Positions 4,661 to 6,110 of a stretch of 64,000 nucleotides of DNA are shown piece after piece. The stretch lies in contig NC_067400.1 of assembly GCF_016432865.1 (NCBI RefSeq), positions 556,140,001-556,204,000 on the forward strand, written 5' to 3'. The DNA is from Antechinus flavipes (lineage: Eukaryota). The notes beneath the pieces are model-generated. The model saw nothing but the letters and a program-made list of their open reading frames with translations. It ran no database searches and was not told where the DNA came from. A program made the position numbers and the translations under genes. How positions within the stretch are numbered: position 1 is the first letter of the stretch; the number at the start of each line of letters is the position of its first letter.

Positions 4661-6110
4661 GGAGTTGTTCGGCAGCCGCCATCTTGTGGAATTGAAACCA
4701 GCGAGTGAAACCGACGCCTGGGGAGCCACACAAAGAAGGAGCTGCAGGCGCCGGGGGTGAGGAGACGCAAAGGGGGAGGTGCCGGAGCGGGGCCGTTTCT
4801 TGTACACGTTCAACACTTCAAATTTGGACCATGGGGAATGTGTTTGGTAACCGCTTCAAGGGACTCTTTGGCAAAAAAGAAATGCGGCTTCTCATGGTCG
4901 GTCTGGACTCTGCAGGAAAGACCACTATTCTGTACAAACTGAAACTGGGAGAAATAGTGACTACTATGCCCACTTTGGATTTCAATGTGGAGATCATACA
5001 GTACAAAAACATTTGCTTCACCGTGTGGGACGTGGGCGGCCAGGACAAGATCCGACCCCTCTGGCGCCATTATTTCCAGAACACGCAGGGGCTGATCTTC
5101 GTGGTTGACAGCGGTGAGAGAGAACGAGTGACCGAGGCCCGTGAGGAACTGATGAGAATGCTGGAAGAGATTGGGAGTAAAGACGCTGCCTTATTAGTGC
5201 TTGCTAACAAGCAGGATCTTCCCAATGCAATGAAAGTAGATGAAATCACAGAAAAACTTGGACTGCATTGTCTCCATCAGAGGAACTGGTACGTCCAAGC
5301 CACCTGTGCCACTAGTGGGGATGGACTCTACGAAGGACTGATCTGGCTGTCAAAACAGCTCCAGAACCAGAAATGAAAAAATCAAAGTTCCTCCTCCCTC
5401 TTCGCTCTCACGTGGCAAACTGTGCCTACTTTGTGGTATGCAGTGCCAGAAACTTTTTTTTTTCTTGTCACAGTATTTCACCAAGCTGTAAAGGTGGCAA
5501 ACACAGGTCTGAAAACAGGTTTTTTATTTAATGTAAATAGTTTTTTTTTTTTCTTTGTTTTCAATGAGACAGTTTCTGGTACTCCTATAAAATATTATTC
5601 AGTCTTTTTTATTGTGTAAAAAAAAAAAAATCAACTGATTGTTTAAAATTCGAAATCCTAAACTGGGCAGAGATTTTAAGCACATAGATACTTGAGTTGC
5701 TGGAGGTTAAAGTGCAGTAGCTAAACTTAACTGCTACTCCTACTGGCGTATGAGATCTGTTTTGAGAGCTATTTTAGTGATTGGTTTTTAACCTGAATTC
5801 AGTACGTGCAGGTGAGTGCACATGCACACTTTTAAATAGTTTTTAAAAATGTAAAAAACAAGTAAAACACTTGAACACACAGAACAGAAAACTATGTTTA
5901 AAATAGGTTTTCTAGTTTCAACTTGACTAGCAGATCATGTGGTTTCTCTTTTGAAACTTAGGAAATTATGATAAAAATCCAACAAGTGATCCATTTTGCA
6001 TGGTTAAAATAGAGCTTCACATATTGTATGTTTAGGGATGTTTATGTATTTTATAAAGTTTGTACTTGTATTTGTGTTCACATGAATACTTATTGGGGAA
6101 AAAAAAAAAA
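4661..6110 (+). other. ARF1: Processed (retrotransposed) copy of ARF1 mRNA: 5'UTR, intronless CDS, 3'UTR and A-tract
   Basis: GC-rich 5'UTR starting ggcagccgccatcttgtgg; uninterrupted CDS; 3'UTR motifs ctctcacgtggcaaac, tttttatttaatgtaaatagttttt and cagtttctggtactcctat match my recollection of the ARF1 3'UTR; A12 at 6099-6110 followed by (CAA)n. No TSD identified. Confidence 0.85.
4831..5376 (+). CDS. ARF1: ADP-ribosylation factor 1-derived retrogene, intact 181-aa ORF
   Basis: ATG at 4831 in gaccATGG context; MG myristoylation start, GLDSAGKT P-loop, WDVGGQ, NKQD and CAT motifs; C-terminus QLQNQK; same length as ARF1. The track's 42-codon extension from GTG 4705 is probably 5'UTR. Confidence 0.88.

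Follow-up and report, generated by a model that had tools for sequence, protein, structure and literature searches.

A putative functional ARF1 retrogene in an olfactory receptor cluster of dasyurid marsupials

The 64,000-nucleotide stretch of the Antechinus flavipes genome analysed here (the window; NC_067400.1, positions 556,140,001 to 556,204,000 of the forward strand) contains an intronless coding sequence (CDS) for an ARF1-derived small GTPase within an olfactory receptor (OR) cluster. The open reading frame (ORF) at 4831-5376 on the forward strand comprises 181 codons plus a stop codon, has no internal stop and begins in the context ACCATGG. The encoded protein (P0001) matches the Pfam family Arf (PF00025) over residues 9-176, with an E-value of 2.7e-72 and a score of 242 bits against a cut-off of 22.3. 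Its best-matching solved chains are those of ARF1 (E-value 7e-100), among which PDB 8SDW scores highest. Compared to canonical ARF1 (P0199), the sequence of which is identical in mouse, chicken and the intron-containing gene of the devil (Sarcophilus harrisii), the window protein shares 82% identity, with 33 differences and no insertion or deletion (indel). An earlier reading of the letters alone, hereafter the sequence-only reading, had described an intact ORF with a strong Kozak context, about 33 changed residues and a full set of nucleotide-binding motifs, and all of these statements were borne out when read from the translated sequence.

The G motifs comprise the P-loop GLDSAGKT (with A27S, K30 and T31 being retained), T48, DVGGQ with Q71, NKQD and CAT, and the same motifs are present in the devil ortholog described below. 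The protein starts with MGN, so that G2 is retained; in the N-terminal helix F5, F9, L12 and F13 are kept, and L8R places a charge on the hydrophobic face. The replacements cluster at residues 46-57, 112-117 (AEDELR to EEIGSK), 135-137 and 147-150, and several of them need two base changes in one codon, namely N95G (AAT to GGT), D114I (GAT to ATT), L116S (CTT to AGT) and D171I (GAC to ATC). Codon comparison confirmed this distribution, which had been proposed from the letters alone. A compensated frameshift as the origin of EEIGSK was rejected, as the segment holds seven in-frame substitutions within 15 nucleotides and shifting the frame gives no better match.

As the parent gene we used the intron-containing ARF1 of S. 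harrisii (assembly GCA_048593225.1, locus sequences L002 and L012), which was compared with the window exon by exon; the two intron-split codons were excluded from the codon-model fits. It has three coding-region introns and four coding exons (L002 3001-3148, 5334-5444, 6097-6221 and 7543-7704) with GT/AG borders, and it encodes unchanged ARF1, not a near-twin of the window protein. The window ORF aligns ungapped to all four exons. Upstream of it, the 36 nucleotides at 4795-4830 align to the 5' untranslated region (UTR) part of the first coding exon (L002 2963-3000, equivalent to L012 9963-10000). Downstream of it, the first part of the 3'UTR (5377-6606, forward strand; ratio of observed to expected CpG, o/e, 0.16) aligns to the ARF1 3'UTR at L012 14705-15958 with 83.8% identity, a Kimura two-parameter distance of 0.185 and 24 indel events. 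After an interspersed repeat the homology resumes in a tail with ATTAAA/AATAAA (7186-7411, forward strand), where 7186-7318 and 7360-7409 match L012 15977-16192, and it stops about 20 nucleotides past AATAAA (~7411). In total ~1.45 kb of ARF1 3'UTR was copied, and the parent 3'UTR is continuous where the repeat interrupts the copy; the 3'UTR is thus as recognisable as the sequence-only reading had held. Since the copy has no introns where the parent has three, and since its UTRs are colinear with the parent mRNA, window 4831-5376 is a processed copy of ARF1. In the devil assembly the retrocopy and the parent are unlinked, lying on CM109176.1 and CM109174.1, respectively.

The 5' end of the retrocopy (~4660) is approximate, because a search of the 10 kb preceding the ATG in L012 did not reveal the non-coding exon 1 of the parent; the GC content climbs from 0.37 to 0.55 near position 4650. 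The leader that follows (4660-4830, forward strand) is rich in GC (0.60) and CpG, with an o/e of 0.83 compared to 0.10 in the flank. At the other end, direct reading revealed a short A-rich remnant (7410-7423, forward strand) at the position expected for a poly(A) tail. No significant target-site duplication was detected, as 37 of 500 shuffles reached the best flank-to-flank match; the A-rich remnant may merge with a degenerate one (compare 4651-4664). The repeat inside the 3'UTR (6607-7185, no strand assigned) does not derive from the ARF1 mRNA. It has five further diverged copies in the window with 69-76% identity (~1540-1658, 13293-13775, 18090-18376, 19373-19629 and 56792-57393), one copy in the devil locus L001 and none in the parent locus; we read it as the 3' terminus of a LINE-1.

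The exact window protein is already present in NCBI nr, UniRef and the RefSeq predictions for A. flavipes, and the gene is predicted in both species by RefSeq and by Ensembl/UniProt. RefSeq also lists a 147-residue isoform, XP_051847315.1 'ADP-ribosylation factor 1-like isoform X2 [Antechinus flavipes]' (P0121), a model in which a GT...AG interval of 102 nucleotides (4987-5088, forward strand; GT at 4987, AG at 5087-5088) is spliced out. Isoform X2 would drop residues V53-Q86, switch II included; the two isoform models hint at transcription only indirectly. A literature search for an ARF1 retrogene in marsupials or in OR clusters returned nothing. The designation as an undescribed gene therefore stands as far as papers are concerned, but not for the databases, in view of the RefSeq predictions for antechinus (exact protein and isoform X2) and devil. 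So far the gene is known from Antechinus and Sarcophilus, pipeline-predicted and uncharacterised.

With 89% amino-acid identity, 'ADP-ribosylation factor 1-like 2 [Sarcophilus harrisii]' (P0006, KAM9034135.1; P0213, XP_012400897.1, UniProt A0A7N4NGQ2) is the closest protein. In both devil assemblies (locus sequences L001 and L013) its gene is intact and intronless and sits between two OR genes, and the L001 flanks are colinear with the window at 92-95% identity. Polarisation of the replacements with the parent as outgroup revealed 23 common to both species, 10 devil-only, 3 antechinus-only and 7 ambiguous ones. The colinear flanks, the OR neighbours and the 23 common derived residues together establish the two copies as syntenic orthologs, so that the check in a related marsupial advised earlier has yielded an intact ortholog at the syntenic site.

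Sequence divergence at the locus is uneven. Divergence between the two species is 5-8% in the flanks and rises to 16-22% over the leader, the CDS and the next ~600 bp. Sites with G/C in the devil and A/T in antechinus exceed those of the opposite kind at 33:5 (leader), 68:5 (CDS) and 95:15 (downstream of it), whereas the flanks are balanced at ~1:1. When the parent serves as outgroup, 54 changes from A/T to G/C (weak to strong, W>S) fall on the devil branch, with none in the opposite direction (S>W) and 6 others. All ten devil-specific amino-acid changes (of the types K>R, N>D, I>V, M>T, N>H, H>R and Q>R) are W>S in the DNA. The GC content at third codon positions (GC3) rises from 0.42 for the parent to 0.58 for the antechinus copy and 0.84 for the devil copy. 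The stem is W>S-biased as well (40:10), part of which could be GC loss in the parent gene.

This directional pattern bears on the alternative that the copies are not orthologs at all, being instead old paralogs, independent insertions, or a pair in which one was overwritten by gene conversion from another copy. Such an origin would fit a synonymous divergence (dS) of 0.97-1.1 next to flanks so similar, a gene region merely 78-84% identical, and the lack of a devil counterpart for window 5388-21528. However, both flanks are colinear, 23 derived residues are held in common, no other copy of this gene type occurs in either locus or in the protein collection, and the excess divergence runs almost wholly in one direction (devil GC, antechinus AT), with no S>W change on the devil branch, and extends ~1 kb into non-coding DNA unrelated to ARF. 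We regard non-orthology as very improbable, and we rejected paralogy or independent insertion as an explanation of the high dS, given the colinear flanks and the W>S asymmetry in non-coding DNA. A dS of ~1 between these syntenic orthologs results from the one-directional AT-to-GC burst in the devil.

The burst zone spans about L001 9770-11700 (opposite window 4590-5387 and 21529-22170) and forms a 1.8-kb CpG island (about L001 9800-11600) with 132 CpGs, of o/e 0.87 in surroundings of o/e 0.04. The antechinus island is weaker, covering 0.7 kb (4660-5376) with an o/e of 0.63, so that the islands of the two species range over o/e 0.63-0.87 against 0.04-0.16 in their surroundings; within the CDS the o/e is 0.53 in antechinus and 0.88 in devil. 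The antechinus CDS has 17 CpGs compared to 7 in the parent, and its GC3 is likewise higher; the sequence-only reading, in which CpGs persisted, was mistaken on this point, as the copy gained them. GC-biased gene conversion hot spots, with their biased, clustered substitutions, are a known pattern. The devil zone resembles them in being short, lineage-specific and nearly pure in W>S changes and in ignoring coding boundaries, and the outgroup-polarised W>S excess reaches the non-coding neighbours as expected for a conversion tract. To judge by these substitutions, GC-biased gene conversion at a putative local recombination hot spot is the best explanation of the burst. Unlike a plain conversion hot spot, the zone is also a CpG island, where promoter-associated hypomethylation may help to keep the CpGs. 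A 228-residue ORF with a TTG start at window 21572-22258 (forward strand), homologous to the GC-enriched downstream zone of the devil, has no Pfam match and is probably not a gene.

The two loci differ in structure as well. The devil copy is without the entire 3'UTR, its homology ending 11 nucleotides past the stop codon, and window 5388-21528 (~16 kb, including the retrocopy 3'UTR and the OR gene at 15890-16834) has no counterpart in L001 10557-11091. Of this stretch, the devil lineage must have lost at least the 3'UTR part, and the remainder could have been gained in antechinus. The devil locus carries a young tandem duplication of ~390 bp (L001 10524-10913 and 10915-11304, 98-99% identical), in which the final 23 nucleotides of the CDS recur together with the stop codon and a new AATAAA that immediately follows the stop. 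The two devil assemblies have one difference in 20,546 bases, an A>C change at L001/L013 position 10122; it falls in codon 41, which reads E in the reference and A in GCA_048593225.1, and the devil-only replacement E41A is thus polymorphic. Immediately upstream, the gene is bordered by simple and tandem repeats in antechinus and devil alike (window 3657-4300, L001 9270-9760); in the devil a ~31-bp unit containing AAAAAAAATTCAAATATTAA recurs many times.

Four intact OR ORFs support the assignment of the locus to an OR cluster in the sequence-only reading. All match the Pfam family 7tm_4, with E-values of 1e-107 to 1e-121; they lie at 15890-16834 (forward strand, the nearest to the retrocopy), 26393-27352 and 35373-36326 (both reverse strand), and 60735-61679 (forward strand). 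Runs of N occupy 3139-3311, 3353-3480 and 50161-50292 of the window.

Between antechinus and devil the non-synonymous divergence (dN) is 0.055 against a dS of ~1, with 10, 12 and 67 differences at the first, second and third codon positions, respectively. The maximum-likelihood dN/dS ratio (omega) of this pair is 0.055 (p=1e-29 against 1). Against the parent it is 0.10 for the devil copy and 0.25 for the antechinus copy, the latter below 0.5 at p=0.005 and below 1 at p=3.5e-8. A comparison independent of codon models gave a similar result: in the fast-evolving zone, codon positions 1 and 2 differ at 22 of 364 sites compared to 174 of 816 non-coding sites (Fisher p=3e-12), a 3.5-fold lower divergence than in the adjacent non-coding DNA. 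Moreover, the 546-nucleotide CDS has no indel in either species, where 3-10 would be expected from the 3'UTR rate (P from 0.04 to 5e-5), and in random substitution histories of matching size the frame stays open in only 3-16%.

A neutrally decaying processed pseudogene, with a frame left open by chance in both species, would sit naturally in a repeat-rich, AT-rich OR cluster; it would also accommodate 33 replacements in an otherwise unchanging protein and the absence of support from expression. It is at odds with a frame intact in two genera and free of indels next to a 3'UTR with 24 events, and the omega between the species and the comparison of codon positions with non-coding DNA refute it for practical purposes; we give it next to no credence. 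Purifying selection has instead acted over the whole history of the gene and in the devil lineage. A functional retrogene was taken to be one with an intact ORF in at least two species and a dN/dS significantly below 0.5, and both were found here. The comparison of dN/dS with UTR divergence suggested by the sequence-only reading thus favours its view of a functional gene over a decaying pseudogene, given the intact syntenic ortholog and omega values of 0.055 and 0.25. Positive selection, which it had also mentioned, could not be demonstrated, with an omega of 0.28 for the stem plus parent in a three-taxon fit.

The same fit assigns an omega of 0.05 to the devil branch and of 0.22 to the antechinus branch. 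Several observations speak against a gene that is functional in both species today. The antechinus value is not significantly below 1 (p=0.34), the codon models assume a stationary base composition that the devil copy violates, and G50D and L8R could equally mean a partial loss of classical ARF function. Among the sequencing runs that hold the stretch, six holders from two studies, none is on record as RNA, an absence that is uninformative; the holders (contigs of ~3-4 Gb) look like whole-genome data of four dasyurid species. Finally, word and profile searches of annotated marsupial proteins found no orthologs above the ARF1 crowd beyond antechinus and devil. The weak resolution of the antechinus branch arises because the long, GC-shifted devil branch blurs the polarisation; when parsimony is restricted to robustly polarised changes, 2 of 7 are non-synonymous (p=0.02). 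Purifying selection on the recent antechinus stretch alone is therefore only suggested.

The gene might accordingly have been functional in the ancestor and in the devil and now be silent or relaxed in Antechinus, as a young pseudogene not yet hit. Besides the branch omega, the CpG island that is weaker than that of the devil, the repeat inserted in the 3'UTR, a predicted isoform X2 that would delete switch II, and the lack of a listed RNA holder although the genome project produced RNA-seq all lean this way. On the other side, the ORF, the start context and all G motifs are intact, the leader has kept its CpG o/e, omega between antechinus and the parent is below 0.5, the antechinus branch carries 3 unambiguous replacements against ~10 third-position changes, and the RNA runs say nothing in either direction. 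Silencing in Antechinus is unlikely on balance, and we favour a lineage-specific retrogene that is probably functional in dasyurids.

A protein from another marsupial, the 'ARF1-like' protein of Monodelphis domestica (P0057), is likewise a 181-residue ARF1 derivative of intronless length. It was rejected as an ortholog, as it has no derived residue in common with the dasyurid gene and no OR neighbours. Unlike the dasyurid protein it has ~12 differences from ARF1, none of them in common, and NKRD in place of NKQD; no OR genes lie within 10 kb, and it is known here from the protein only. Most likely it is an independent, younger copy.

Many of the replacements fall into three areas. The first covers switch I and the interswitch, with I46M, I49L/M, G50D, T55I, V56I, E57Q/P and S62C. 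The second covers the N-terminal helix and its pocket, with I4V, A6G, L8R, I20L, D171I/A and N175K, where residues 171 and 175 adjoin the cavity residues L170 and S174. The third consists of the alpha3-beta5 loop (112-117) and helix alpha4. Across the 85 distinct ARF cores retrieved by the searches, six positions replaced in the dasyurid gene (G50, N95, D114, E115, A137 and D171) are invariant; G50D, N95G, D114I, E115G and A137D are identical in antechinus and devil, and residue 171 is I in antechinus and A in devil. G50D removes the glycine of the switch I motif PT[IV]GF in both species, which argues for an altered behaviour of switch I and not against membership of the ARF family by descent.

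In Arf1, the residues F5, L8, F9 and L12 fill a cavity formed by I20, L37, L39, Y58, I61, F63, L166, Y167, L170, L173, S174 and L177, and L8 contacts the myristate; L8K was introduced so that nucleotide exchange would no longer require a membrane surface (PMC10994351). The dasyurid protein resembles this engineered [L8K]Arf1 (PDB 8SDW; PMC10994351) in having a basic residue in place of L8. However, in [L8K]Arf1 the mutation was made in the laboratory and the remainder of ARF1 is wild-type, whereas R8 is natural, occurs in two genera and comes with I4V, A6G, I20L and changes in the C-terminal helix, a comparison made by sequence only. Compared to the ARF1 parent, the retrocopy has kept the length of 181 residues in the same register, G2, the P-loop, T48, DVGGQ with Q71, NKQD, CAT and a homologous 3'UTR, and switch II of the antechinus copy is unchanged. 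It differs from the parent in lacking introns, in its location on another chromosome, in the 33 replacements with L8R among them, and in its higher GC3.

With the nucleotide pocket and the catalytic glutamine intact, a GTP/GDP switch is expected, and binding and hydrolysis of GTP have most likely been preserved in a product that would be a myristoylated GTPase of the ARF type. From L8R and the switch I changes we infer that its membrane dependence and its recognition of guanine nucleotide exchange factors, GTPase-activating proteins or effectors may be altered. The product would then probably work in membrane traffic, with partners or a membrane dependence unlike those of ARF1.

The distance of the 3'UTR to the parent is 0.185, compared to 0.026-0.037 per lineage since the antechinus-devil split. 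This suggests that the retroposition is several times older than the split, which would place it, very roughly, ~45-90 million years (My) ago if the split occurred ~15-20 My ago. For comparison, the A. flavipes genome paper dates the Antechinus-Murexia split to 11 million years ago (Ma) and uses a calibration of 4-22 Ma for Sarcophilus-Murexia (PMC9290055). With an age several times that of the split, copies might therefore exist outside Dasyuridae.

We propose that the gene began as a reverse transcript of an ARF1 mRNA that integrated into an OR cluster before Antechinus and Sarcophilus diverged, and that its 5' end gained or retained a promoter region in the form of a CpG island, from which it may be transcribed. 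An early burst of ~23-30 amino-acid replacements would have been followed by purifying selection as a protein-coding gene. During this process the GTPase switch would have been kept, and the regulator and effector surface and the myristoyl-switch module remodelled. Separately, in the devil lineage, a 1.8-kb zone comprising the leader, the CDS and ~1 kb downstream would have passed through an AT-to-GC burst by GC-biased gene conversion. Taken as a whole, this account of a retroposed, early-burst and then selectively maintained ARF1-derived gene with a separate GC burst in the devil is one that we hold with good, though not full, confidence. A bolder version can be offered only tentatively, and we would not yet bet on it: dasyurids may possess an extra ARF-type GTPase, retroposed ~45-90 My ago and rebuilt at G50D, L8R and 112-117, residues that no other ARF changes, with a job distinct from that of ARF1, such as membrane-independent activation or a new tissue effector set, and in the devil a hot spot of GC-biased conversion may have turned the locus de novo into a 1.8-kb CpG island in ~20 My or less.

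PGK2, derived from PGK1, is one of the classical functional retrogenes of housekeeping genes. The dasyurid gene resembles such retrogenes in being a processed copy of a broadly expressed, highly conserved parent that came under purifying selection after a faster early protein evolution. Unlike in the case of PGK2, the parent is autosomal, and X inactivation therefore offers no rationale for its retention. Two features raise the present case above routine: the radical yet conserved replacements in a near-immutable protein, and the sharply bounded GC burst of the devil. The latter inflates dS twenty-fold over the local neutral rate, which calls for caution in dating or classifying copies by dS. 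As for the former, ARF1 is essentially frozen across animals, with identical devil, mouse and bird proteins. A maintained derivative with 33 replacements, among them a switch I glycine changed in no sampled ARF and a natural analogue of the laboratory mutation L8K, would be a natural mutational experiment on which surfaces of ARF can be retuned, and would serve as a clear-cut marsupial case of a lineage-specific retrogene.

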